Virus record (IMG/VR): IMGVR_UViG_3300023184_000026
Location: 1 to 64,000 of that record
Reading direction: 5' to 3' (one strand)
Length of the DNA stretch: 64,000 bases
Below are positions 4,718-30,916 of this stretch, in pieces (the stretch's first letter is position 1; each line of letters begins with the position of its first letter). The translations under genes and the position numbers were made by a program. The notes under the pieces were generated by a model, which saw only the letters and a list, made by a program, of their open reading frames with translations, was not told the origin of the DNA and ran no database searches.

Positions 4718-7700
4718 ATGGCAACACAAATACAATTACGCAGAGGTACAGAAAGTCAATGGACGAACGCCAATCCAGTTTTGATGCAGGGCGAAATTGG
4801 CATTGAACTTGATACAAATAAATTCAAGATTGGTAACGGAGTCACTGCGTGGAATTCTTTATCATATGGCTCCACTTATGGTGGCACAAGTGGAACCAAC
4901 GGTAGTAGCGGTTCAAGTGGAACAAGCGGAGCCAACGGTAGTAGCGGTTCAAGTGGATCAAGCGGTACAAGTGGATCATCGGGTACAAGTGGTACAAGTG
5001 GTTCAAGTGGCACAGCTGGATCAAGTGGCAGCAGTGGTACAAGTGGTGCAGCGGGCACATCTGGTTCAAGTGGAACGTCTGGTGTAACAGGTGCGGGTGG
5101 ATCAAGTGGATCATCGGGTACAAGTGGATCAGCCGGATCAAGTGGCAGCAGTGGATCAGCTGGAACAAGTGGCAGCAGTGGCACATCAGGAACAAGTGGC
5201 ACAGCCGGATCAAGTGGTGCCGGTGGATCATCAGGTTCAAGCGGCACAAGTGGATCAGCTGGATCAAGTGGTTCTTCTGGCACAGCAGGAACATCTGGTT
5301 CAAGTGGTACATCAGGAACAAGCGGCTCTTCTGGAACAAGCGGTACAAGTGGATCATCGGGTTCAAGTGGCACATCTGGTGCAACAGGTGCGGGTGGCAC
5401 AGCTGGTACAAGTGGATCATCGGGTTCAAGTGGCACAGCAGGAACAAGTGGCAGCAGTGGCACAAGTGGCACGGCAGGAACAAGTGGCAGCAGTGGCACA
5501 GCTGGATCAAGTGGCAGCAGTGGCACAAGTGGTGCAGCAGGCGCGGGTGGATCATCGGGTTCAAGCGGTACAAGTGGATCATCGGGTTCAAGTGGCACAG
5601 CAGGAACAAGTGGCAGCAGTGGCACAGCAGGAACAAGTGGCAGCAGTGGCACAGCAGGAACAAGTGGCAGCAGTGGCACAAGTGGTGCAGCAGGTACAAG
5701 TGGCACAGCCGGATCAAGTGGATCGTCTGGTACAAGCGGAACTTCTGGTGTAACAGGTGCCGGTGGATCATCAGGTACAAGTGGTTCAAGTGGCACAAGT
5801 GGAACAAGTGGAACATCAGGCAGCAGTGGCACAAGTGGTGCCGCTGGTGCAGCTGGCACAAGTGGTTCAAGTGGCACAAGTGGAACAAGTGGAACATCAG
5901 GCAGCAGTGGCACAAGTGGTGCCGCTGGTGCAGCTGGCACAAGTGGTTCAAGTGGTGCCGCTGGTGCAGCTGGCACAAGTGGCACAAGCGGTTCAAGTGG
6001 CACAAGTGGAACATCAGGCAGCAGTGGCACAAGTGGTGCAGCTGGTACAGCTGGCACAGGTGGTTCAAGTGGCACAAGTGGAACATCAGGCAGCAGTGGC
6101 ACAAGTGGTGCAGCTGGTACAGCTGGCACAAGTGGCACAAGCGGTTCAAGTGGCACAAGTGGAACATCAGGCAGCAGTGGCACAAGTGGTGCAGCTGGTG
6201 CAGCTGGCACAAGTGGCACAAGCGGTTCAAGTGGCACAAGTGGAACATCAGGCAGCAGTGGCACAAGTGGTGCCGCTGGTGCAGCTGGCACAAGTGGCAC
6301 AAGCGGTTCAAGTGGCACAAGTGGAACATCAGGCAGCAGTGGCACAAGTGGTGCCGCTGGTGCAGCTGGTACAAGTGGCACAAGCGGTTCAAGTGGCACA
6401 AGTGGAACATCAGGCAGCAGTGGCACAAGTGGTGCCGCTGGTGCAGCTGGCACAAGTGGCACAAGCGGTTCAAGTGGCACAAGTGGAACATCAGGCAGCA
6501 GTGGCACAAGTGGTGCCGCTGGTGCAGCTGGTACAAGTGGCACAAGCGGTTCAAGTGGCACAAGTGGAACATCAGGCAGCAGTGGCACAAGTGGTGCCGC
6601 TGGTACAGCTGGCACAGGTGGTTCAAGTGGCACAAGTGGAACATCAGGCAGCAGTGGCACAAGTGGTGCAGCTGGTACAAGTGGCACAAGCGGTTCAAGT
6701 GGCACAAGTGGAACATCAGGCAGCAGTGGCACAAGTGGTGCCGCTGGTACAGCTGGCACAGGTGGTTCAAGTGGCACAAGTGGAACATCAGGCAGCAGTG
6801 GCACAAGTGGTGCAGCTGGTACAGCTGGCACAAGTGGAACATCAGGCAGCAGTGGCACAAGTGGTGCAGCTGGTACAGCTGGCACAAGTGGTTCAAGCGG
6901 CACAAGTGGTGCCGCTGGCGCAGCTGGTACAGCTGGCACATCAGGCAGCAGTGGTACAAGTGGCGCAGCGGGCAGTCCGGGTGGAAATGGTACATCAGGT
7001 TCAAGTGGTACAAGTGGTGCCGCTGGCGCAGCTGGTACAAGTGGCACATCTGGTAGCAGTGGCACAAGTGGTGCCGCTGGCGCAGCTGGTACAAGTGGCA
7101 CATCTGGTAGCAGTGGCACAAGTGGTGCCGCTGGCGCAGCTGGTACAAGTGGCACATCTGGTAGCAGTGGCACAAGCGGTGCCGCTGGCGCAGCTGGTAC
7201 AAGTGGCAGTGCCGGTAGTGCCGGTAGTGCTGGTACATCTGGCAGTGCCGGTAGTGCCGGTAGTGCTGGTAGAACTGGATCAAGTGGCACAAGCGGAGTC
7301 AACGGAGCCAACGGAACCAGTGGATCAAGTGGCACAAGTGGTGCCGCTGGCGCAGCTGGTACAAGTGGCACAAGTGGTTCAAGTGGCACAAGTGGAACAT
7401 CAGGCAGCAGTGGCACAAGTGGTGCAGCTGGTACAGCTGGCACAAGTGGTTCAAGCGGCACAAGTGGTGCCGCTGGCGCAGCTGGTACAGCTGGCACATC
7501 AGGCAGCAGTGGTACAAGTGGCGCAGCGGGCAGTCCGGGTGGAAATGGTACATCAGGTTCAAGTGGTACAAGTGGTGCCGCTGGCGCAGCTGGTACAAGT
7601 GGCACATCTGGTAGCAGTGGCACAAGTGGTGCCGCTGGCGCAGCTGGTACAAGTGGCACATCAGGTTCAAGTGGCACAAGCGGTGCCGCTGGCGCAGCTG

Positions 7701-9265
7701 GTACATCTGGCAGTGCCGGTAGTGCCGGTAGTGCCGGTAGTGCTGGTACATCTGGCAGTGCCGGTAGTGCCGGTAGTGCCGGTAGTGCTGGTAGAACTGG
7801 ATCAAGTGGCACAAGCGGAGTCAACGGAGCCAACGGAACCAGTGGAACCAGTGGATCAAGTGGCACAAGTGGTGCCGCTGGCGCAGCTGGTACAAGTGGT
7901 ACATCAGGCAGCAGTGGCACAAGTGGTGCCGCTGGCGCAGCTGGTACAAGTGGCACATCAGGTTCAAGTGGCACAAGCGGTGCCGCTGGCGCAGCTGGTA
8001 CAAGTGGCACATCAGGCAGCAGTGGTATAAGTGGCGCAGTGGGCAATCCGGGTGCAAATGGTACATCTGGCAGTGCTGGCACAAGCGGTGCCGCTGGCGC
8101 AGCTGGTACAAGTGGCAGTGCTGGCACAAGCGGTGCCGGAACCATATCTGGCGGCACAGCAAATTATGTTGCAAAATTTACCAATGCAACAACAATATCA
8201 AATAGTCAATTATATGACAACGCAACAAATGTTGGTATTAATACAACTACACCAAATGCTAAATTGGATGTATATGGAAATTTTATTGCGACAGGAAGTG
8301 TATCTGCATTTACAACCGGCGATGCCATTAAAGTGCGAGCATCTACCGGAACAACTCAAGTATACGGTACATATCAAAATACAAGTGGTAGACTTGCCGT
8401 TGGAGTTGAAAGTAGTGTAGGCGGCACTATGATAGTAGGGGCACCGGCATATGCTGGGTTTATAGGAGCCAGCGGCGGCACGAACATACTGGCCTTTGGT
8501 ACAGGTGATAATACCAGAATGATTATAGACGGTTCTGGCAATATTGGTATTGGAACAACTACACCAAATGCTAAATTGGATATAACTGGAAATACAATTA
8601 TATCAGGTTCTTCAAACGATACATTGACACTTTATAGAAGCACTGTAGCCGCAACCAGAATCGCGTGCATCAACAGTTTTGGAACGGGTTGGGCTGGTGT
8701 TAGTGGCGCTGGAATGGTGCTTGGTGGACAAGCTGGTATGGCTACCACCATATACGGCGGAGGAGTGGTCGCCGCGTACATAGATACTAGCGGAAATGTA
8801 GCTATTGGAAAAAGTACACCAATCAATGCTAAATTGGATGTAAGTGGCGATACAATAATAACAGGTTCTGCAACTATCACAACATCACTTGGTGTTGGTA
8901 CTGCTGCATCTGCTACAACAGGAGAAATTCGCGCTACAAATAATGTCACTGCTTACTATTCTGATGATCGTCTTAAAAATAATCTTGGTAATATTCCAGA
9001 TTCACTAAATAAAGTATTATCTCTTAATGGATTTTATTTTGAAGCCAATGAAACTGCACAAAATCTTGGTTATACAAAACAAAAAGAAGTGGGTGTATCT
9101 GCTCAACAAGTACAAGCAATATTGCCAGAAATTATTGCACCAGCACCAATTGATTCCAAGTATATGACAGTAAGATATGAAAAACTTATTCCACTACTTA
9201 TTGAAGCAATCAAAGAACAAAATTCTATGATAGTAGATTTGCAGAAAAAAATAAATAGATTATAA
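4718..9265 (+). CDS. Long tail fibre: Mtd/hyaluronidase-like N-terminal domain, ~360 Gly-X-Y triplets, C-terminal S74-type intramolecular chaperone
   Basis: N-terminus IQLRRGT..QW..ANPVL..GEIG.E.DT.KFKIGNG..AWNSL.Y. Gly-X-Y from about 4880 to 8140. C-terminus YYSDDRLK...YEKLIPLLIEAIKEQ. Confidence 0.85.
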   Translation: MATQIQLRRGTESQWTNANPVLMQGEIGIELDTNKFKIGNGVTAWNSLSYGSTYGGTSGTNGSSGSSGTSGANGSSGSSGSSGTSGSSGTSGTSGSSGTAGSSGSSGTSGAAGTSGSSGTSGVTGAGGSSGSSGTSGSAGSSGSSGSAGTSGSSGTSGTSGTAGSSGAGGSSGSSGTSGSAGSSGSSGTAGTSGSSGTSGTSGSSGTSGTSGSSGSSGTSGATGAGGTAGTSGSSGSSGTAGTSGSSGTSGTAGTSGSSGTAGSSGSSGTSGAAGAGGSSGSSGTSGSSGSSGTAGTSGSSGTAGTSGSSGTAGTSGSSGTSGAAGTSGTAGSSGSSGTSGTSGVTGAGGSSGTSGSSGTSGTSGTSGSSGTSGAAGAAGTSGSSGTSGTSGTSGSSGTSGAAGAAGTSGSSGAAGAAGTSGTSGSSGTSGTSGSSGTSGAAGTAGTGGSSGTSGTSGSSGTSGAAGTAGTSGTSGSSGTSGTSGSSGTSGAAGAAGTSGTSGSSGTSGTSGSSGTSGAAGAAGTSGTSGSSGTSGTSGSSGTSGAAGAAGTSGTSGSSGTSGTSGSSGTSGAAGAAGTSGTSGSSGTSGTSGSSGTSGAAGAAGTSGTSGSSGTSGTSGSSGTSGAAGTAGTGGSSGTSGTSGSSGTSGAAGTSGTSGSSGTSGTSGSSGTSGAAGTAGTGGSSGTSGTSGSSGTSGAAGTAGTSGTSGSSGTSGAAGTAGTSGSSGTSGAAGAAGTAGTSGSSGTSGAAGSPGGNGTSGSSGTSGAAGAAGTSGTSGSSGTSGAAGAAGTSGTSGSSGTSGAAGAAGTSGTSGSSGTSGAAGAAGTSGSAGSAGSAGTSGSAGSAGSAGRTGSSGTSGVNGANGTSGSSGTSGAAGAAGTSGTSGSSGTSGTSGSSGTSGAAGTAGTSGSSGTSGAAGAAGTAGTSGSSGTSGAAGSPGGNGTSGSSGTSGAAGAAGTSGTSGSSGTSGAAGAAGTSGTSGSSGTSGAAGAAGTSGSAGSAGSAGSAGTSGSAGSAGSAGSAGRTGSSGTSGVNGANGTSGTSGSSGTSGAAGAAGTSGTSGSSGTSGAAGAAGTSGTSGSSGTSGAAGAAGTSGTSGSSGISGAVGNPGANGTSGSAGTSGAAGAAGTSGSAGTSGAGTISGGTANYVAKFTNATTISNSQLYDNATNVGINTTTPNAKLDVYGNFIATGSVSAFTTGDAIKVRASTGTTQVYGTYQNTSGRLAVGVESSVGGTMIVGAPAYAGFIGASGGTNILAFGTGDNTRMIIDGSGNIGIGTTTPNAKLDITGNTIISGSSNDTLTLYRSTVAATRIACINSFGTGWAGVSGAGMVLGGQAGMATTIYGGGVVAAYIDTSGNVAIGKSTPINAKLDVSGDTIITGSATITTSLGVGTAASATTGEIRATNNVTAYYSDDRLKNNLGNIPDSLNKVLSLNGFYFEANETAQNLGYTKQKEVGVSAQQVQAILPEIIAPAPIDSKYMTVRYEKLIPLLIEAIKEQNSMIVDLQKKINRL
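4880..8140 (+). repeat. Low-complexity 9-nt-based tandem repeat encoding Gly-X-Y, with a higher-order ~520-560-nt internal duplication
   Basis: Units such as ggcacaagt, ggttcaagt, ggtgcagct. Marker GGCAGTCCGGGTGGAAAT occurs at 6971 and 7529; AGAACTGGA at 7271 and 7793. Confidence 0.95.
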
Positions 9266-15944: not shown

Positions 15945-18900
15945 ATGGCAATCGAACAAAATGGAAATTATAGCCCTTCAGAACGTATCGTTTCACCTGG
16001 TGTATTCACCAGAGAAATTGATCAATCGTTTCTTGCACAGGGTGTGGCAGCAATCGGCGGCGTGGTAGTCGCCCCTTTCCCAAAAGGACCGGGGTTTTCA
16101 CCAACCGTAGTTACCAGCGAGGCGGACTTAGCTAATATCTTCGGCGATACCGATGGTACATTGTATGGTCCAATTACCGCACAACAATATATTCGTCAGC
16201 AAGGTCAAGTCACCGTCGTTCGCGTCGGTGGATTGTCTGGCTACGAACAGAAAAAAGCATTGTTTGTCACTGCAATTGCTGGACAATACTCTCGTTTTCA
16301 AGAAAATTCAATTGTTTCTGGATCGTTGTTGTCCGGTACAATTTATCCAAATTCTGTTGTTAATAGTCGATTTAATATCACAGGAAGCGTAAACGCAACA
16401 TTTGAAAGTGGATATTATATGAATGAATCAAATGTTATCGGAACACTTCAACTCAGAACGTTTTTAAGTTCATCAACAAATCTTTATGGTGCGGTGACTG
16501 GTTCTGACGGATGTTTGGATTATTTCCGCGCAACTGCGTCTATCAATAATACTCCGTTCCTTGTCAGTGGATCGTCTCCTTGGAATAATACAAGACTGTC
16601 TGAATTGACAATTTCCAGAGTAAACGGAGCTTGTGATTTTGTTCTGGAAATTTCCGGAATTCTAACTGGTTCATATGGTCCGTTTAATCCAAATGGATTT
16701 CAACCAGGCGTTGGTTTGACTGAAGACGGTTGTGAAAGCTCTTCATATGCAACTGGAAGCGACAGTGTTCTTCTTGCAGTTCTTGCCAACACAGCATATG
16801 ATACAGGACAAAACTTATACGGATTCAGCGGTTCTTTGTTACACACATCGTCCGCAGAATCAATTACTGCTGATTTTTCATTGGACCTGAATACCATTTA
16901 TACAGACACCGAAGGAAACACCGCAAGTTCATCATATGGAACATATCAGTTCTCGCTTGATGGAAATTCCAACAAGTATATCACAAATGTATTTGGTACA
17001 GATCCAGTCGCCGGATATTATCCAGTAGCTGCTCTTCAAAAGAAAGAAGCGGCGTATACGTATGTAAACTTCAAACACAAAACAAAGAAAATAATAACTG
17101 AAATGTTGGAATCTGGAAGTTGGAAGATTTCCGTTAGTTTCCGCGATGCTATGGATTTCCAAGATGGTATATTACCAGCCGATGGAACATCAACATACGA
17201 CCTAACAAACGCATATACTCCTTATATTCGTTCACAGGCAATCGCTGGATATAACACCGCTGATGCGCAGGCTTATGATCTATTCAAGGTTCATACTTTG
17301 AGCGATGGCACCACATCAAACTTGATGTATAAAGTTGAAATCAGCAATGTTCGCAGTCCGGGATCAATATCAGGTACAAAGTACGGATCATTTACTCTTG
17401 GTTTACGTGGCTATGGAGACACTGATCTAAAACCAAATTATTTGGAACGTTACGATAATTTGAATATTGATCCAGACAGCCCAAACTTTGTTGCTCGTCG
17501 AATTGGTGATACATACAACTATATAGACTTCAATGGTAAAATAATTGAAAATGGAACTTTTCCACAAAAGAGTAAATATATTCGCGTTGAAACAGCAACA
17601 TCACCATGGCCAGTCGGTTCAATTCCATTTGGATTTGGTCCATATACATCACCAATCGGTGGAGATTATGCTCGTCTTGGTAAATTAGCAGCAATGCAAT
17701 ATTGCAGTGCATCTATATATACCCTACAAGTTGGTCGTTATGCATCAGGTGTGGTATTTAATCCAGCACCTGGCCAAGCAGATGCGGAATTGGCGGGATT
17801 ATATCCAAACGGATCGTCGGTTGGACCTGAACTTGACAACAAGCAATATTTTGCACCAGTTCCACAAGGCGCATCTGTTAATTCAAATGTAGCATTTGAT
17901 CTGGAAAATGACTGCGGAATATCTCCACTATATGTTGCTTCCCAAGAATCCTTAAATGTTAAGAAACGTCGTTTCATTCTTGGTTTCCAAGGTGGATTTG
18001 ATGGTCAATCTCCATCAATGCCGATTCTTATCGGAGATGATATTCTTCCAACAAATCAACAAGGACTGGATTGTTCTACATCAACAAGTCGCGGGACTTA
18101 TGCGTATAGACAAGCTATTTCTGCATTGAGCAATGCCGACGAGTTTGATTTCAATCTCGTGGTTGCACCTGGTATCAATTATGACGATCATTCATACGTC
18201 GCAACATCAATCGTTGATGTATGTGAGCGCCGTGGTGATGCGTTTTATATCATGGACATTGCACCAAATCAAACAGCTGGTGCTGCTGCTATTCAAAATG
18301 TTGTTGATTTGGCCGGTGAATTTGATACAAATTATGCAGCATCGTATTATCCTTGGGTCAAGATCAGCGAATCAAACAGCAACAAGATAATGACAGTTCC
18401 TCCGTCGGTTGTTATGATGGGCGTATATGCTTCAAACGACAAGGTAGCGGCTGAATGGTTTGCTCCTGCCGGTCTAAACCGTGGTGGTATTGCAACTGCC
18501 ATATCGGTGGCTGACAGATTGTCTCACACCGAACGTGATAGTCTATATGAAGGTCGCGTCAATCCAATTGCTGCGTTTCCAGGACAAGGTGTTGTGGCGT
18601 GGGGTCAAAAGACACTACAACGTCAGCCTTCCGCTTTGGATCGCATCAATGTACGTCGTTTGTTGATTGCATTGAAGAAGTTCATTGCGTCGTCAAGTCG
18701 CTATCTGGTGTTTGAACAAAACGTCAGTACGACACGCCAACGTTTCTTGAATATTGTAAATCCATACTTGGAGAGCGTACAACAACGTTCCGGTATCTAT
18801 TCATTCAAAGTAGTTATGGACGATAGTAACAATACTCCAGATATAGTTGATCGTGGTATATTGTATGGTCAAATATTCATCCAGCCAACACGCACTGCGG

Positions 18901-18959
18901 AATTCATTGTACTTGATTTCAATGTACTACCAACGGGTGCTACTTTTCCTGGAGCCTAA
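15945..18959 (+). CDS. Contractile tail sheath protein
   Basis: N-terminal IVSPGVFTREIDQSFL. C-terminal WFAPAGLNRG, LYEGRVNPIA.FPGQG..WGQKTLQ, ALDRINVRRLLI, IQPTRTAEFI.LDF. Confidence 0.95.
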   Translation: MAIEQNGNYSPSERIVSPGVFTREIDQSFLAQGVAAIGGVVVAPFPKGPGFSPTVVTSEADLANIFGDTDGTLYGPITAQQYIRQQGQVTVVRVGGLSGYEQKKALFVTAIAGQYSRFQENSIVSGSLLSGTIYPNSVVNSRFNITGSVNATFESGYYMNESNVIGTLQLRTFLSSSTNLYGAVTGSDGCLDYFRATASINNTPFLVSGSSPWNNTRLSELTISRVNGACDFVLEISGILTGSYGPFNPNGFQPGVGLTEDGCESSSYATGSDSVLLAVLANTAYDTGQNLYGFSGSLLHTSSAESITADFSLDLNTIYTDTEGNTASSSYGTYQFSLDGNSNKYITNVFGTDPVAGYYPVAALQKKEAAYTYVNFKHKTKKIITEMLESGSWKISVSFRDAMDFQDGILPADGTSTYDLTNAYTPYIRSQAIAGYNTADAQAYDLFKVHTLSDGTTSNLMYKVEISNVRSPGSISGTKYGSFTLGLRGYGDTDLKPNYLERYDNLNIDPDSPNFVARRIGDTYNYIDFNGKIIENGTFPQKSKYIRVETATSPWPVGSIPFGFGPYTSPIGGDYARLGKLAAMQYCSASIYTLQVGRYASGVVFNPAPGQADAELAGLYPNGSSVGPELDNKQYFAPVPQGASVNSNVAFDLENDCGISPLYVASQESLNVKKRRFILGFQGGFDGQSPSMPILIGDDILPTNQQGLDCSTSTSRGTYAYRQAISALSNADEFDFNLVVAPGINYDDHSYVATSIVDVCERRGDAFYIMDIAPNQTAGAAAIQNVVDLAGEFDTNYAASYYPWVKISESNSNKIMTVPPSVVMMGVYASNDKVAAEWFAPAGLNRGGIATAISVADRLSHTERDSLYEGRVNPIAAFPGQGVVAWGQKTLQRQPSALDRINVRRLLIALKKFIASSSRYLVFEQNVSTTRQRFLNIVNPYLESVQQRSGIYSFKVVMDDSNNTPDIVDRGILYGQIFIQPTRTAEFIVLDFNVLPTGATFPGA

Positions 18960-22232: not shown

Positions 22233-22730
22233 ATGGCAGAACTAATAGACCAAAATCAAATTTTCTTTACAGCATTTGAGCCAAAAGTGGCCAATCGTTT
22301 CATAATGAATATCGACGGTATACCCGCGTATACTATAAAAGCAGCAGGTCGTCCCAATATCAACGTTGGTGTTATAACAATGGATCATATCAATTTGAAG
22401 CGCAAGTTGAAAGGCAAGAGCGAATGGCAAGACATTAATATCACTTTGTATGATCCAATCGTTCCGTCTGCTGCTCAAGCATGCATGGAATGGGTGCGTC
22501 TGGCACATGAATCTGTCACTGGTCGCAACGGGTATGCCGACATGTACAAGAAGGACGTACAAATTCAAGTTCTTGGTCCTGTTGGAGATATTGTTGAAAA
22601 GTGGGACATCAAGGGTGCGTTTCCTTCACAAGTTGATTTCAATGCAACTGCGCTGGATTGGTCAAGTGCAGGAGATGCGTTGACAATAAGTGTCACACTG
22701 AGCATGGACTATTGTATTCTGCAATTTTAA
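22233..22730 (+). CDS. Tail tube protein (T4 gp19-like)
   Basis: FEPKVANRFIM.IDGIPAY.IK..GRP; W.DI.ITLYDPI.PS.AQA.MEWVRL.HESVTGR.GY...YKKD. Confidence 0.9.
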   Translation: MAELIDQNQIFFTAFEPKVANRFIMNIDGIPAYTIKAAGRPNINVGVITMDHINLKRKLKGKSEWQDINITLYDPIVPSAAQACMEWVRLAHESVTGRNGYADMYKKDVQIQVLGPVGDIVEKWDIKGAFPSQVDFNATALDWSSAGDALTISVTLSMDYCILQF

Positions 22731-24100: not shown

Positions 24101-25156
24101 ATGAAAAAATCTGAACTAAAAGATTTGATCAAAGAAATGCTACAAGATCAACATCCATTGCCACAAGACACGCATGCTACTGATTTGAATGAGTTGGTTG
24201 ACAATTCTGTTATGATTCAAACCAGCAAAGGACCATATAAATTTTGGGCAGATGAAGATCGTGAAGAAGACAATATCAAGTTGTTTCATTATGTCAAAGG
24301 ACCGGACGGCAAAGAATACGACGTGAACATAAGTCCATATGAAATTAATTGGAAATCCCCAGATATGATTGAAAAAGTAAAGAAGTGGATTGAATCTGAT
24401 ATGCCAAATACAAAAATCAGAGAAAATAATTTACAAGAAAACAAAACTACCATGAAAAAATCTGAACTAAAAGCACTACTAAAAGTAATTGTTCAAGAAG
24501 TTGTTGCAACAAAGCAAAAACGTATTGACGAAACCAAAAGATTATCTGGATTCAAGAAACCATCCACATCAAAAAATATGGGCAGTCTCAAAGAAGACAT
24601 CTTGAGCATGATTCGCGAAGCTATTGATGAATCGGACATTGAAGAAATTCGTGTTAAAGGTGCTGTGGGCAGCAAGTTTAAAGTGCAAGATTCAAGTTCT
24701 CCAACCGGCTGGGCAGTCAAAGGTCACAAGACCATTCCAGATGGCACACCAACCGAAGCTCCAAAAGGACCATATATTCCAAAAGGAATTGCTGGTATGG
24801 GTCGTCCAAAGAAAGTTGCACCAGTTTCAAGTGTCGGTGGATCTGACTTTGATACAGCAACTCGTGGTGCAATTGAAAATATTTTGACCGCCGCTCCCAA
24901 CACAACAGACAGCGATATTATACAACAATTGTCTTCAAGTGCAAGCGAAGAAGAAGTATCTCTCAATCTAGATCCAGCGTTTGTCAAGAAAACCGCAGAT
25001 GAATTGAGAAAAGAACTTTCTGCTGACACAGACAATCAACTAGACGACGCTCCAGAAAGTGATCTTGCTGCTATGTCATCTTCAGAAGAAAAAAGAAAAG
25101 CTGCACAGCGCGCCTTTATTATTAAGAAACTACAAGCAAAACGAGCAATCAAATAA
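24101..25156 (+). CDS. Hypothetical modular protein with two MKKSELK leaders
   Basis: 351 aa. MKKSELK at codon 1 and codon 118. Confidence 0.6.
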   Translation: MKKSELKDLIKEMLQDQHPLPQDTHATDLNELVDNSVMIQTSKGPYKFWADEDREEDNIKLFHYVKGPDGKEYDVNISPYEINWKSPDMIEKVKKWIESDMPNTKIRENNLQENKTTMKKSELKALLKVIVQEVVATKQKRIDETKRLSGFKKPSTSKNMGSLKEDILSMIREAIDESDIEEIRVKGAVGSKFKVQDSSSPTGWAVKGHKTIPDGTPTEAPKGPYIPKGIAGMGRPKKVAPVSSVGGSDFDTATRGAIENILTAAPNTTDSDIIQQLSSSASEEEVSLNLDPAFVKKTADELRKELSADTDNQLDDAPESDLAAMSSSEEKRKAAQRAFIIKKLQAKRAIK

Positions 25157-25160
25157 TATC

Positions 25161-26129
25161 ATGAAAAAACTAGTCATATCATTTCTGGCTCTGTTGCTGT
25201 TGACAGGCTGTCCAAGTATACCAAAAATGCCTAGTTTTGGAAAGAAACCGGAAAAATCCGAACAAACAGCAAAAGAGCCAGAAGTAAATGTGGCGGCAGT
25301 TGTTGCTGCACAAGCCGCAAAACAAGCAATGGAAAAAGCCGAAGCAGCAGAAAAGAAAGCAGCAGATGACAGAAAGAATATGGAGGCTGAATATGCCAAG
25401 TTAAAGGCGGAAACACAAAAGGCATATGATGAGTTGAAAAAGAAAGACCAAGACAACTTTGATCATATTGGCGAGTTGAATTATGGTATATACCATGTTA
25501 CACAAGAAAAGAAAAAGATAGACATCAACACAACCATTGCTCATTTGCGCAGCAAAGAAATAATGATGCGCACAGACAGATTGAATGACGCTGAAAAAGC
25601 TGAGATACAAAAAGAAGTTGCGGATGAAAAATCAAAAACAGTTGATCAATTGTATATCAAATACAAACAAACCATTGATTTGGCTGTGAATCAAAAAGCT
25701 CAATTGGATGATGCTGAAGCAATAATTGTTCAAAAAGAAAAAGAAAAGTCGCAACTAAAAGAATCCAATCGTATTGCAATTGAAAAAATAGAAGCCGAAA
25801 AGAAAATAGAAGTTGATCGCATTCGTGCTGATGCAGTAGATCAAGTTCGTTTATTAAAAGAAGCACAACAACAAGAACTTATGGTATGGTTGGTTAGATT
25901 GTTGGGCGGTATTGGAATATTGTTTGTGATTCTTGGTGTGTTGTTCAAGAGCTTCAATATGATATTTTCTGGCATCACATTTCTGGGTCTTGCATATATG
26001 GCAACAACAATTCCTATGTGGATTATAGGAGCAATAGCGGCTGGTTCTATATTATTGATGGGTGTTATTCAATTGATTACTGCAAACAAAAAGAAAGCAG
26101 CTGAATCGGACTCAAAGAAAAAGATATAA
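25161..26129 (+). CDS. Lipoprotein with long coiled coil and C-terminal membrane helices (spanin-like topology)
   Basis: Lipobox LLTG-C17; ~230-aa heptad-rich region; hydrophobic C-terminal segments. ATG at 25161. Confidence 0.65.
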   Translation: MKKLVISFLALLLLTGCPSIPKMPSFGKKPEKSEQTAKEPEVNVAAVVAAQAAKQAMEKAEAAEKKAADDRKNMEAEYAKLKAETQKAYDELKKKDQDNFDHIGELNYGIYHVTQEKKKIDINTTIAHLRSKEIMMRTDRLNDAEKAEIQKEVADEKSKTVDQLYIKYKQTIDLAVNQKAQLDDAEAIIVQKEKEKSQLKESNRIAIEKIEAEKKIEVDRIRADAVDQVRLLKEAQQQELMVWLVRLLGGIGILFVILGVLFKSFNMIFSGITFLGLAYMATTIPMWIIGAIAAGSILLMGVIQLITANKKKAAESDSKKKI

Positions 26130-26203: not shown

Positions 26204-27055
26204 ATGGATAATACAATACCAGTATCAAGACAAGCAGCACCTGTTTCAACATCGGTGCATACACAAAACCAACAGGCAGTCACGCCAGCCGAAACAAAGT
26301 TGGATTTTCCAGTTGAATATATAGACATTCCATCAGAAGGCTATTTTTATCCAACATCTTCTCCATTGTCATCAGGTCGCATTCAATTGAAACACATGAC
26401 CGCAAGAGAAGAAGATATTCTTACCAACCAAAATCTTATTAAAAAGGGAGTTGTACTTGATGAATTGTTGAAAGCAATCATTGTTACTCCAAATGTTAAA
26501 CTTGATGATATTGTGGTTGGTGATAAAAATGCTATATTTGTAGCCGCTCGAAGGCTTGCATATGGTGACAAATATTCTGCAAAAATTACATGTCCAAAAT
26601 GTGGAGAAGAAAATGAAGTAGAAATTAATCTTGGAGATGTAAAGTTCAAAGAATTTGATTTTACCAAATATACAAAAGGTGAAAATGCATTTAATTTTGA
26701 ACTACCAATATCTAAAAAGAATCTTACATATAGACTTCTTACTCACAAAGATGAAAATGATATTGATGCTGAATTGAAAGGTTTGGCAAAAATATCAAAA
26801 ACAAACGCACCAGAAATGACCACGCGTTTAAAATATACCATCATAGCAATTGATGGAAACAATGATAGAGGATTGATTAAAAAGTTTGTGGATAATATGC
26901 TTGCCAAAGACAGCATATCTTTTCGCAAACACATAAAACAAAATACTCCAGACATGGACATGACATTTGATTTTACATGTACCGCGTGCGGACACAACGA
27001 GCGGATGGCATTGCCATTGGGTGTGGACTTCTTTTGGCCTTCCTCTGGAGTATAA
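26204..27055 (+). CDS. Tail assembly chaperone / baseplate hub assembly protein (T4 gp26-like)
   Basis: IDIPSEG.FYP, MTAREEDILTNQNLIKKG.VLD.LL, two CxxC motifs. Lies directly upstream of the tape measure. Confidence 0.7.
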   Translation: MDNTIPVSRQAAPVSTSVHTQNQQAVTPAETKLDFPVEYIDIPSEGYFYPTSSPLSSGRIQLKHMTAREEDILTNQNLIKKGVVLDELLKAIIVTPNVKLDDIVVGDKNAIFVAARRLAYGDKYSAKITCPKCGEENEVEINLGDVKFKEFDFTKYTKGENAFNFELPISKKNLTYRLLTHKDENDIDAELKGLAKISKTNAPEMTTRLKYTIIAIDGNNDRGLIKKFVDNMLAKDSISFRKHIKQNTPDMDMTFDFTCTACGHNERMALPLGVDFFWPSSGV

Positions 27056-27263
27056 AATAGCCCTACACGAAGAGGTATTTAACCTCTGTTATTATAGTAA
27101 TGGTGCATTCAGTCATTCTGAGGCATATGCTCTGCCTGTATATTTGCGAAGATTTTATATAAAAAAGCTGGCAGACACCAAAAAGAACGAGGCTGATCAG
27201 CACAAGTCTTCTGAGAATGTACAAAATTCTACTGGAAAAATACATCGTCCAGCTATACGATAA
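27033..27263 (+). CDS. +1-frame extension of the chaperone (lambda GT-like product), probably reached by frameshifting
   Basis: Coding-like sequence FGLPLEYKIALHEEVFNLCYY...LPVYLRRFYIKKL overlaps the chaperone 3' end with no in-frame ATG. Confidence 0.5.
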   Translation, partial: FGLPLEYKIALHEEVFNLCYYSNGAFSHSEAYALPVYLRRFYIKKLADTKKNEADQHKSSENVQNSTGKIHRPAIR

Positions 27264-27319: not shown

Positions 27320-30300
27320 ATGGCCGATGATCCAAAAAATTCGCGTTTGAGTATTGACACTGAATCAACAAGGGTTCTCGCCGATCTTCTTAAAAAGGCT
27401 GCGGAACACACCAAAGCTTTAGATGAACGATTTGAAAATATTAAAGAAACGCTGAAAGAAGAAACTCAATATCTCAGTGAAAATTATGATTTATCCAGAA
27501 AAATGGCGGGTGAATTGGGGAAACAAGAAAGAGCACACGAAAGTTTAAGAGATCTGGTAAAAGATACAAACAAGCAACTTGCAGACCAACCCAAAAAAAT
27601 ACAAGCCGCAACAACCGCTCAAACAGATGCCACGGATAATTTACAAAGAGCAACAACAGAACAACAGGCAAAACAAACCGCCGTTACTGAGTCATCTAAT
27701 CAGCTTTCAAGAAGCAGAGATGAACTTAAAATCGCAAAAGCTCATGGTTTGGATGCGGATATAATAAAAGCATTAAAAGACGAACTCAAAGAAAAACAGA
27801 AAGCACATGGTCTTGCTCAAAAAGAGTATAAATTGTCAACAGATTTGGTAAAAACTGCAAATGAAAATCTTGTTATTGCCAACACAAATTTAGCAACAGA
27901 ACAAGCCACCCTAGGGAAGTTGGGAGAACAATCAAGAATTTATACGGAACAGCTTTCTATTATCGGCGCATCAAAGGCAGCATTGTCAGATCAAGTACGA
28001 GTCCTCAATTCAATAGATAGACTGCTTGGTTCAAGTGGAGAAGAATACGGAAAAATAAAATCATTGGTAATGGATGTTGCCAAAGGTGGATTGACTGCAT
28101 GGCTGGCATTATTGCAAGCTTCATTAGAACGCTGGAAAGAATTGGATAAAGCAGCTGGAGAATTTAGAATCAAAACCGGATTTTTAGTTTCTCAAACAAG
28201 AGAGTTGAATAATTCTGCAAGAGAAGTAAATGTTGAAATGGCTCAGATTGGAGTTGGATTGGATGAAGCATATGGAGCAGCATCTGCATTAACCAATCAA
28301 TTTCAAGTAATTGGTATAGTAACCAAAGACATGATAAAAGATACTGCTCAAATGGCAGCAAATTTAGGAATATCGGTTGAAGATTCTGCCAAGATAAGAA
28401 GCATTTTTACTTCAATATCAAAATCGTCTGGAATTACTGCCACTCAAATGATGGGTGCAGCCGCACGACTTGCTGAAATGGGAGGAGTTGCTCCTGCTAT
28501 GGTAATGAAGGATATTGCAGAAGCATCCGAAGATTCTTTAAAATTCTTATCAAAAAGTCCTTTAGCTTTGATGAAAGCTGCGGTTGAAGCCAGAAGACTT
28601 GGAACAACCATCAATTCTTTATCAAAGTCATCCAGAGGATTTTTAAATTTCCAAGATTCAATAACATCTGAATTAACAGCATCAGCCATGGTTGGAAAAT
28701 CTCTAAACTTCCAAGCTGCCAGAAGAGCTGCATTTGAAAAAGACATTGTAAAATCAAGACAACTTGCATTGAAAGAAATTTCAAAACTTGGAGATTTTAA
28801 TAAGTTGGATATTCTACAACAAGAAGAAGTTGCAAAGGCAGCTCATATGACAGTTGACGAAATTATTCAACAGCAAAATCAGACAAAAATATTAGCTGCA
28901 TTAGAAAAAGAACGCCCAGAAATGTTTAAAGAATATATGGCGATGCAGAAAAAACTAAGAGAGGATGAAAAGGCTGGAACAAATGATCTTGTAAAGCAAG
29001 GAGAAGAACTTGTAAAGAGACAGATGCGTCAGACCGAATTAAACAAACTCACAAATTCTTTCAAACAAATTTGGACCGATATATCAGACGCATTGCTTCC
29101 AATTGCAAATATTATAATGCCTATTATAATAACGGCGGTTAGATTACTTATAATACCAATAAAAATTATAGCTGGATTGGTAAGAGGATTTTTGAGTGCG
29201 TTTGATGGAATAGGAAAATCACTCAGATCAGGTGAGTCCGGAGCAATGTCATTGGAAAAAGTGATGGTAAAAATAGGATCTGCAACTGAAACGGTTTCAA
29301 TTTGGATGGAAAAGATTGGTGAAACCGTTGCAAGATTGATCAATTTATTTGCTATATTTAAAATATCAATTGGAAAGGCAGCTGATGCGTTCAAGCCATT
29401 TAACGCTATCGAAAGATTTTTTAGAGGAATTTCTCTTGGATTTTTAAACATGTCAAGCGGCACAAAGACTTTTGCACAGTCATTTTCTCATTTTGCAAGA
29501 GAAGGAACAATTTTAGGAAATATTTTTAAGAACATATCGTCGTTTATTACGAAGTCAAAAATGAATATGTCTGCGTGGTTTGGGGAAGCCAGCAAAATTG
29601 GTGGCGTGTTTAAGGGCATAAAGACCCTTATGTCTGCGTGGTTTGGGGAAGCCAGCAAAATTGGTGGCGTGTTTAAGGGCATAAAGACCCTTATGTCTGC
29701 GTGGTTTGGGGAAGCCAGCAAAATTGGTGGCGTGTTTAAGGGCATAAAGACCCTTATGTCTGCGTGGTTTGGGGAAGCCAGCAAAATTGGTGGCATGCTT
29801 AAGGGCATAAAAGATATGGCGGGTAAAGTTGGTGCTTCTATCGCAAGATGGTTTTCTGGCAGAACATTTTTTTCCCGAATAAAAAATATATTTTCTACAA
29901 TAAAAAATTTATTTGGCGGAGGAAGTGCGTCAATGTTTAAACCATTGCTTAGTATATTTAGCGGTGTGGGTGGAGTGTTTGGACCAATATTTAAAGGACT
30001 GAGTACACTTTTTAAATTTGCAGGAGTGTTTGCTAAATTCCTTGGACCAATTGGACTAATAATAAACGCCGTTCAAGTATTATGGGAACTTGGATCGCAA
30101 TTGATGGACATATGGTCCGACGACAATCTTAATATAGGTCAAAAGATTTTAAAATCAATTCTTGCAATTCCTGGTGCAATCTTTGATGTATTGATTTCTC
30201 CATTTATTGATATTGGAGTATGGGTTTTAAGAAAATTCGGATTTGATATTCCCAATGAAATGGTCGTTGGTATAAAATCCGTTTCAAAAAAAATATTTCA

Positions 30301-30916
30301 AGCCATCACAATGCCTTTTGCTTGGGCACTCGATTTGCTATATGACACATTTTTGGGAAAGTCTCCTTCGCAGATAGGACTTGGTATAGTTGACGGACTT
30401 ACATCTGTTGGTTCAATGATATTTGATGCGCTATCAAGTCCGTTCAAGAAAGTTATGAATTTTGTGTCTGGAATATTTGGAAAAAACGTTGGCATAGCGC
30501 GTATGATTGTGAATGCAATAAAATCAATGGGTGGAACAATTTTCAACACGCTTTCTTCAGCATTCAAAAAAGTTATGGAATTTGTAAGTAGCATTCCATT
30601 AATTGGTAGATTTTTTGGAGGAAAAGACGCATCAAAAGCTGCTATTGAAGCAAAATCAATAGTAGAAAGTAAGATCAATCATATGGTTGAAATCGTAAAT
30701 ATGGATGAACTCAAGATGAGTATAGATAAATTAACAGATGCAATATCCTCACTTGGCGGCGCAGCCGGTGGTGCAACACCTGTAGTTAATGTTAATAATA
30801 ATTCTGATGCGATGATATCAAAGCTTGATGAGCTAATAGACCTACTGACGGGTGGCGCAGTTGCTGTACACATGGATGGAACGTTGGTGTCAAAGGCGCT
30901 TGCAAGGGTATCATAA
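27320..30916 (+). CDS. Tape measure protein
   Basis: 1198-aa helical, Ala/Gly/Leu-rich protein with aromatic-spaced C-terminal repeats, between chaperone and baseplate genes. Confidence 0.85.
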   Translation: MADDPKNSRLSIDTESTRVLADLLKKAAEHTKALDERFENIKETLKEETQYLSENYDLSRKMAGELGKQERAHESLRDLVKDTNKQLADQPKKIQAATTAQTDATDNLQRATTEQQAKQTAVTESSNQLSRSRDELKIAKAHGLDADIIKALKDELKEKQKAHGLAQKEYKLSTDLVKTANENLVIANTNLATEQATLGKLGEQSRIYTEQLSIIGASKAALSDQVRVLNSIDRLLGSSGEEYGKIKSLVMDVAKGGLTAWLALLQASLERWKELDKAAGEFRIKTGFLVSQTRELNNSAREVNVEMAQIGVGLDEAYGAASALTNQFQVIGIVTKDMIKDTAQMAANLGISVEDSAKIRSIFTSISKSSGITATQMMGAAARLAEMGGVAPAMVMKDIAEASEDSLKFLSKSPLALMKAAVEARRLGTTINSLSKSSRGFLNFQDSITSELTASAMVGKSLNFQAARRAAFEKDIVKSRQLALKEISKLGDFNKLDILQQEEVAKAAHMTVDEIIQQQNQTKILAALEKERPEMFKEYMAMQKKLREDEKAGTNDLVKQGEELVKRQMRQTELNKLTNSFKQIWTDISDALLPIANIIMPIIITAVRLLIIPIKIIAGLVRGFLSAFDGIGKSLRSGESGAMSLEKVMVKIGSATETVSIWMEKIGETVARLINLFAIFKISIGKAADAFKPFNAIERFFRGISLGFLNMSSGTKTFAQSFSHFAREGTILGNIFKNISSFITKSKMNMSAWFGEASKIGGVFKGIKTLMSAWFGEASKIGGVFKGIKTLMSAWFGEASKIGGVFKGIKTLMSAWFGEASKIGGMLKGIKDMAGKVGASIARWFSGRTFFSRIKNIFSTIKNLFGGGSASMFKPLLSIFSGVGGVFGPIFKGLSTLFKFAGVFAKFLGPIGLIINAVQVLWELGSQLMDIWSDDNLNIGQKILKSILAIPGAIFDVLISPFIDIGVWVLRKFGFDIPNEMVVGIKSVSKKIFQAITMPFAWALDLLYDTFLGKSPSQIGLGIVDGLTSVGSMIFDALSSPFKKVMNFVSGIFGKNVGIARMIVNAIKSMGGTIFNTLSSAFKKVMEFVSSIPLIGRFFGGKDASKAAIEAKSIVESKINHMVEIVNMDELKMSIDKLTDAISSLGGAAGGATPVVNVNNNSDAMISKLDELIDLLTGGAVAVHMDGTLVSKALARVS
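29567..29811 (+). repeat. 63-nt tandem repeat in the tape measure (MSAWFGEASKIGGVFKGIKTL)
   Basis: Copies start at 29567, 29630, 29693 and 29756. The first three are identical; the fourth is partial with two substitutions. Confidence 0.95.

Follow-up and report, generated by a model that had tools for sequence, protein, structure and literature searches.

Programmed frameshifting in the genes for tail assembly chaperones is a textbook case of recoding in bacteriophages. The conserved tail chaperone frameshift has been reviewed, the shift being nearly always -1 and T4 being cited as an exception (PMC5009743). T4 gp26 has been listed among the hub assembly chaperones (PMC3004832), and passages in two papers that cite the identification by Vladimirov, Gautam and Davidson (2022; Virology 566:9) (PMC10274946, PMC12846349) place the tail assembly chaperones of T4-like phages in the gp26/gp51 family, with a short gene and a long fused gene in place of the frameshift. 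A +1 chaperone frameshift at TTT-CGC has been proposed, as a prediction only, for the HF1 group of haloarchaeal myoviruses and for HSTV-2 (PMC7230728; PMC5009743). As for the slip itself, UUU_Ynn is especially +1-prone in bacteria, also where no stop codon follows, and RF2 uses CUU_U (PMC5009743); UUU_CGN is the motif of influenza PA-X and of amalgaviruses (PMC7230728). [quoted passage not shown] Comparison with related sequences makes it likely, in our judgement, that a +1 slip on UUU_U produces the long form of this chaperone.

The chaperone (P0001; coordinates in Table 1) carries two CxxC knuckles, C130/C133 and C259/C262, and has the C-terminus L G V D F F W P S S G V, its gene ending GAC TTC TTT TGG CCT TCC TCT GGA GTA TAA (D F F W P S S G V stop). 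The +1 frame is free of stop codons from 26964 until the TAA at 27261-27263, and from GGC 27036 onwards it encodes 75 residues that begin GLPLEYKIALHEEVF..., the only candidate starts in this frame being TTG 26967 and GTG 27021. The original prediction, made from the letters of the window and its ORFs, had given the end of the chaperone, the DFFWPSSGV terminus and the +1 peptide, all of which are borne out by the sequence, the +1 ORF counting 75 codons and no ATG. The two overlapping ORFs sit between the gene of the tail tube and that of the tape measure; four unassigned ORFs separate the tube gene from that of the chaperone, and the +1 ORF ends at 27263, just before the tape measure gene begins at 27320. 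No alternative genetic code was required for the translations.

In the mechanism that we propose, 26204-27055 would encode the short form (TAC-N), and a fraction of the ribosomes, after decoding Phe-277 (UUU 27032-27034), would slip one base forward. The peptidyl-tRNA-Phe would then re-pair with the overlapping UUU (27033-27035), and GGC (27036-27038) would be read next in place of UGG. Shifted ribosomes would bypass the TAA at 27053 and add the 75 residues to residues 1-277, giving a predicted fusion product of 352 aa (TAC-NC) with the junction ...D-F-F-G-L-P-L-E-Y-K.... By analogy with lambda gpG/gpGT, the shared N part may coat the product of the tape measure gene that follows, and recruitment of the tail tube subunit may fall to the C extension, which is helical. 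We infer that the event is ribosomal and runs +1 rather than -2, and its efficiency and the binding partners of the two domains are likewise part of the model.

P0001 matches the Pfam family PF12322 (T4_baseplate), the family of T4 gp26 and gp51, with an E-value of 1.2e-18 and 68.1 bits against a curated cut-off of 24.5, residues 55-278 being aligned to profile positions 9-219; it also matches phrog_150, 'baseplate hub'. In cultured relatives, namely Microcystis phage Mel-JY01, Flavobacterium phage immuto, Bacillus phages SP-15 and HSE3, and Streptomyces phage BRock, the gene order is sheath, tube, gp26-type gene, a small "hypothetical protein" and tape measure. The position of the gene between tube and tape measure in these phages is the canonical chaperone position, and family membership together with the location upstream of the tape measure gene fits a tail chaperone. 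The original prediction had spoken of a tail chaperone of the G type; the chaperone and its place upstream of the tape measure stand, in the form of a gp26-type protein, whereas by sequence it belongs to PF12322 and phrog_150 and not to the lambda G type. A blastn search of the locus against cultured phages gave no match.

A scan of viral contigs yielded 57 related loci, from 98% down to 28% identity. Almost all of them end in F-F-(W-P), with a stop 1-6 codons further on and an out-of-frame ORF, in the +1 frame with few exceptions, that contributes another 39-88 codons. The distinct single-gene loci tabulated, which reach down to about 27% protein identity, keep TTY TTT at the two Phe codons, and in 36/36 of them the second, TTT, precedes T or C; among them three Firmicute phages keep the TTT shift codon although the gene itself favours TTC (TTT:TTC 2:7, 1:9 and 0:5). 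Most loci read TT(C/T) TTT TGG CCT, while one clade has TTT TTT TAC and another TTT TTT CGC; in cultured phages the site is TTT TTT CAC (SP-15), TTC TTT CGT (HSE3 and Streptococcus phage GXN1), CTG TTT CGC (BRock) and, as a CTT_T variant, TTT CTT TGG (immuto). All relatives with the extension thus carry UUU_U, UUU_C or, once, CUU_U, that is, UUU or CUU before a pyrimidine, on which the P-site tRNA is able to re-pair fully one base forward. Stops in the +1 and zero frames confine any shift to 20-26 nt around the motif in L003, L012, L018, L023-32 and L034. The A-site codons across the family are UGG, CGN, UAC and CAC, none of them a stop. Of the motif TT(T/C)TTTTGG that the original prediction expected to be conserved, the TTT before T or C is what has been kept throughout the single-gene loci; the TGG is present in most, other clades having TAC, CGN or CAC.

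The same long product could also arise by a -2 ribosomal slip, which would give FFF-GL, or by RNA polymerase slippage that drops one U. Many relatives do carry seven T (TTT TTT TGG), and Mu-type chaperones were said in the original prediction to use -2. The run is interrupted in the window and its clade (TTCTTTT), in immuto (TTTCTTT), in HSE3 and GXN1 (TTCTTTC) and in BRock (CTGTTTC), and polymerase slippage as it is known needs a longer tract than four T. A -2 slip in the window would put tRNA-Phe on UCU, and an in-frame paralogue of one relative, described below, reads FF-GL with no additional Phe. Moreover, contigs from two RNA libraries match the genomic T count, though they are blind to minor variants. 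We therefore regard these routes as improbable for the locus as a whole, and +1 slippage on UUU_Y as the better account of it.

The protein conservation of the extension begins at the first two +1-frame residues, Gly-Leu. This pair is encoded inside the overlap, ahead of the zero-frame stop, in a stretch where what the zero frame reads after Trp-Pro differs among relatives in both identity and number. An alignment of 23 extension sequences (A1) has the consensus GL..EY....YE.IF.L.Y..GGFSF.EAYNLP..LR.WF..RL, with L2, Y31, P34 and R38 invariant, and the nucleotide differences between relatives fall mainly at third codon positions of the +1 frame (for example 8, 7, 31 and 10, 6, 21 for the three positions). 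This third-position excess, together with the conservation in A1, indicates purifying selection on the +1 frame. A hidden Markov model (HMM) of the extension built from metagenomic members, with E-values calculated at Z set to 1000, recovers the ORF in Mel-JY01 (5e-25), immuto (2e-15), HSE3 and GXN1 (4e-5) and SP-15 (9e-4).

Such a conserved ORF might instead be a separate small gene of 70-98 aa, with GTG 27021 or TTG 26967 as its start or with ribosomes reinitiating past the TAA at 27053. Both codons are indeed in the +1 frame, in Mel-JY01, immuto, SP-15, HSE3 and BRock the gene callers enter ORFs of this kind as separate hypothetical proteins, the Atlas holds protein clusters of 73-84 aa, the uncultured phage LR756508 has an ATG 8 nt before its site, and a Shine-Dalgarno sequence would not be expected anyway if the host belonged to the Bacteroidota. 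In 13/37 loci, nonetheless, no ATG, GTG or TTG is available to the extension before the zero-frame stop, and three of these (L003, L018, L053) are in addition free of ATG throughout the extension. The GTG at 27021, initiation at which the original prediction had named as an alternative, is followed directly by a TAG in the +1 frame in the 98%-identical relatives L003-5, which have A at 27025, and contigs of three of four public runs (X7, X19, X20) carry the same A. No start position is conserved across the family, the conservation sets in upstream of the zero-frame stop, and lineages without the shift have the domain solely as an in-frame fusion to PF12322. The original prediction had also considered homologues with an ATG of their own and no slippery site; what the relatives have is a slippery codon in every tabulated single-gene locus, and often no start at all. 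Independent initiation is hence very improbable, and a shift that brings ribosomes into the frame from TAC-N is favoured. The G/A polymorphism at 27025 leaves the zero-frame Val unchanged when A is present.

A natural control is provided by the lineages that lack the +1 ORF, one represented by L014 and the other by L015/16 with L072, L076, L077 and L079. Their site reads TTC TTC TGG CC(A/G), despite a preference for TTT in the gene (12:0 and 9:1), and TTC TTC stands at the site in 6/6 two-gene loci, which amount to two independent lineages (plus T4) and not to six independent events. RF2 genes behave likewise, the shift codon not being conserved where frameshifting is unused (PMC5009743). Each of the two lineages possesses a second PF12322 paralogue downstream, to which the extension is fused in frame at the C-terminus (extension HMM E 6e-22 and 6e-23; Pfam E 2e-15 and 3e-7). 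The fused junctions read ...SFF-GLTPNYKITLHKEIF... in L014 (GLTPNYK) and ...EIF-GIGPESKLAIHSEIF... in the L015 clade (GIGPESK), and the FF-GL junction of L014 is exactly the one to be expected in the window (DFF-GLPLEYK) from a +1 shift. The dual coding of FFWP and FFGL that the original prediction pointed out gains support from this junction and from the Gly-Leu conserved from the start of the extension. The zero-frame tail FFWPDAEL stands in L014 as well as in L017, its putatively frameshifting sister, and nearly every synonymous site across the tail differs between the two. By a word search, fused proteins of about 304 aa form 72 protein clusters. T4 gp26 contains PF12322 only, ends EFFELL and a stop, and has no out-of-frame ORF, and T4 gp51 consists of PF12322 and a 48-residue tail. 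In L014, a 282-aa DUF7487 gene (L014:3866-4714) lies between the short and long chaperone genes.

[quoted passage not shown] It might be objected that there is no recoding at all, and that the arrangement reflects an assembly error, a recent pseudogenising mutation or a chance open frame. Indeed, with the stop-triplet frequency of 0.047 on which the estimate rests, 75 open codons have a probability of about 0.03 within the window, and other genes of the window are followed by 54-67 open codons past their stops; taken in the window alone, the open +1 frame is weak evidence, and it is the comparative data that lift it above chance. The region 27029-27055 is spanned without an indel by contigs from two independent DNA runs and two lake-water metatranscriptome libraries, although such contigs cannot reveal minority transcripts with another T count, nor the translation of the RNA. 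These four independent read sets and dozens of diverged loci share the frame relation, and the extension is under purifying selection. One related locus, L020, has both parts in one frame, having one T fewer, and was considered as a natural in-frame fusion; it was rejected, as L020 is the erroneous one, homopolymer indels breaking its gene. We give the absence of recoding almost no credence, and the original prediction of a programmed +1 event joining the chaperone to the downstream ORF gains from the comparison, through the 36/36 TTT before a pyrimidine and the fused paralogues with FF-GL. As to L020 itself, several one-base homopolymer indels relative to close relatives were noted at L020:2900-4200, and one of them breaks the same chaperone gene.

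Several points weigh against a programmed slip on UUU_U. Its support, in every family member, comes from sequence comparison. No RNA structure was detected at 27020-27140 (fold z = -0.09), the synonymous sites upstream vary, and no Shine-Dalgarno-like purine tract is conserved among relatives; as no stimulatory element was found, the efficiency of the shift may be low. The original prediction had a Trp codon waiting in the A site, but UGG is not obviously a slow codon, given that the phage encodes a tRNA-Trp(CCA) and that TGG is used 12 times per 1000 codons. The conservation of TGG CCT is accounted for in part by dual coding (Trp-Pro/Gly-Leu) and is no signal in itself. Finally, in the TTT TTT T lineages a -2 slip or RNA polymerase slippage would reach the same frame. 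With regard to tRNA supply, the genome has 36 tRNA genes for 18 amino acids, located outside the window at G000:C1:85822-100280 and 196133-198156; the tRNA-Trp(CCA) reads the zero-frame A-site codon and a tRNA-Gly(GCC) the +1-frame A-site codon, and the set of 36 includes none for Phe, the slipping tRNA, and none for Asp.

Structural comparison offers further leads. An AlphaFold2 (AF2) model of TAC-N (alignment A5) reached a predicted local distance difference test score (pLDDT) of 87.7, and a model of the fused homologue L015:3831-4742 (alignment A3) reached a pLDDT of 91.2 and a predicted template modelling score (pTM) of 0.85, its extension being modelled as helices 232-248, 255-259 and 263-289 with pLDDT >90. 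In an exhaustive structure alignment of TAC-N, the top three of 48,161 chains were 3klu YqbN (Z 5.3, 79 residues), 3fgx (Z 4.6) and 2ob9 (Z 4.3, 95 residues), all of which cover residues ~154-257 between the CxxC knuckles at Z values under the tool's reliable level; the same chains return for the fused-homologue model. 2ob9 is the HK97 tail assembly chaperone and YqbN is an XkdN-type tail chaperone, and this specific ranking of chaperone folds amounts to a consistent lead, short of proof. In the PDB, Foldseek found no structure at E <= 0.001 and phmmer no relevant sequence, and the sub-domains matched no Pfam family at E <= 10. A complex prediction of the extension with the tube protein scored 0.00 in both runs, weighing neither way.

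The possibility that the extension corresponds to the C-terminus of gp51 (PF28602, Gp51_C) was tried and found no support: hhalign of A1 against gp51 alone, or against four gp51-like tails (A4), was empty, in a comparison for which only three gp51-tail relatives had been retrieved, and the extension HMM had no match in the T4 locus. In a precomputed table the fused relatives carry PF12322 only and no PF28602, which gp51-like proteins do carry, and an Atlas feature score of 0.89 between the extension and Gp51_C is a lead only.

Two further relatives deserve mention. The uncultured 484-kb phage LR756508 (L002:2989-3276) has the site TTT CTA TTC CCT, with UUU_C one codon earlier, and its +1 frame also has an ATG 8 nt ahead of the site, so that in this lineage either the shift or a start of its own might be used. 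In Xanthomonas phage XacN1 (AP018399; L063:3247-3495), a gp26-like gene contains GCT TTT TTT ATT and is followed by an 86-codon ORF in the -1 frame, so that a -1 version on U_UUU_UUU may exist there. The XacN1 -1 ORF scored -0.7 bits with the extension HMM, and BLASTP found no significant similarity between the two.

Table 1. Positions in the window of the chaperone locus, its candidate shift site and the other tail genes referred to in the text
Feature	Position	Strand	Size	Details
TAC-N gene (P0001)	26204..27055	+	283 aa	putative tail assembly chaperone, gp26/gp51 family (PF12322)
Candidate shift site TTC TTT TGG CCT	27029..27040	+		TTC 27029-31, TTT 27032-34, TGG 27035-37, CCT 27038-40
TAC-N zero-frame stop TAA	27053..27055	+		read from sequence
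+1-frame extension (TAC-C)	27036..27263	+	75 codons + TAA	starts GGC 27036
Tape measure protein gene	27320..30916	+	1198 aa	phrog_167 E 2e-13; phrog_58 E 2.7e-8
Tail tube protein gene	22233..22730	+	165 aa	phrog_4542 E 9.7e-26
Tail sheath gene	15945..18959	+	1004 aa	phrog_23 E 3.3e-81

Elsewhere in the window, two ORFs that match no family, each about 350 aa long (24101-25156 and 25059-26129), lie directly upstream of TAC-N, overlapping by 98 nt in a +1 relation if GTG 25059 is the start. The 1515-aa product of 4718-9265 combines Mtd_N with some 20 collagen triple-helix repeats and, at the C-terminus, a Peptidase_S74 chaperone domain, which makes it a probable tail fibre; because of the repeats, both strands have very long open frames there, such as 4876-8157 on the minus strand. 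The 774-aa product of 9655-11979 matches phage families of 'regulator of chromosome condensation' (RCC1-like) repeats.

Public annotation gives little hint of the arrangement. In the GenBank records PP395634, MW353176, KT624200, MF418016 and KX925554 (loci L001, L060, L061, L062 and L065), the chaperone is entered as 'baseplate hub subunit' or 'hypothetical protein', the extension is annotated only past an internal start, as a hypothetical protein of 36-78 aa, and the joined product is annotated in 0 of the five. Both labels, "baseplate hub subunit" and "hypothetical protein", mislead, and the long product is absent from protein databases.

The comparison lends good support to placing the locus in the class of tail chaperone frameshifts, as a variant in direction (+1), in site (a minimal UUU_Y) and in chaperone family (gp26/gp51), and part of this may already have been described by Vladimirov et al. 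(2022). More tentatively, and with somewhat more doubt than confidence on our part, a UUU_Y +1 shift at Phe-Phe could be the ancestral route of the whole family, which would have given way at least three times (in T4, in L014 and in the L015 clade) to duplication and in-frame fusion, the slippery codons being lost on each occasion. If so, the route would span phages of Bacteroidota, Cyanobacteria, Firmicutes and Actinobacteria, it would explain T4 as the exception to the conserved tail chaperone frameshift, and it would provide a +1 site that is minimal, works without a stimulator and comes with its own natural control; this ancestral scenario would be novel only if the frameshifting relatives are absent from Vladimirov et al. 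(2022). In the locus and its relatives, evolution appears to switch between recoding and gene duplication for the same two products, and the site could serve as a compact test case for how UUU_Y promotes +1 slippage when neither a stop codon nor a Shine-Dalgarno element helps.

Among described +1 systems, the HF1-group haloarchaeal myoviruses and HSTV-2 resemble the window in that the fusion needs +1 and that the first ORF has a conserved TTT plus pyrimidine within a few codons of its stop; in HF2 this ORF ends AAG TTT CGC AGA TAG, and TTT CGN likewise occurs in HSE3, GXN1, BRock and the L055 clade. A family link to the 156-aa chaperone of halovirus HF2 was considered and rejected, there being no PF12322 match and the motif alone in common. 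With the bacterial UUU_Ynn and CUU_U sites, the latter that of RF2 prfB, the locus would share re-pairing of a P-site tRNA-Phe or tRNA-Leu one base forward; unlike prfB, it has neither a stop codon in the A site nor a Shine-Dalgarno-like stimulator. The hexamer UUU UGG itself was proposed earlier for the Yersinia yopN-tyeA hybrid (PMC5009743), and in Y. pseudotuberculosis mutation of UUU-UGG did not abolish the hybrid (PMC3789692), which makes this precedent itself uncertain.

With lambda gpG/gpGT (Levin 1993; Xu, Hendrix and Duda 2004) the locus has in common the two overlapping ORFs directly upstream of the tape measure gene, the second of them without a start of its own, a short slippery site close to where the first ORF ends, and short and C-terminally extended predicted products. 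No sequence similarity of the window locus to lambda G or T was found, and the two differ in that lambda shifts -1 on the heptamer G_GGA_AAG and has a small G-like protein, whereas here the shift would be +1 on the tetranucleotide UUU_U and the N part is a 283-aa zinc-ribbon PF12322 protein. T4 gp26/gp51, on the other hand, is alike in protein family, in the FF motif at the end of the domain and in the logic of a short and a long form, and differs in that the T4 long form is a separate gene, whereas the window has a single gene and a +1 ORF. The locus and its relatives would in this way tie the gp26/gp51 family of T4 to the frameshift rule of tail chaperones, through a +1 shift on a four-base site.

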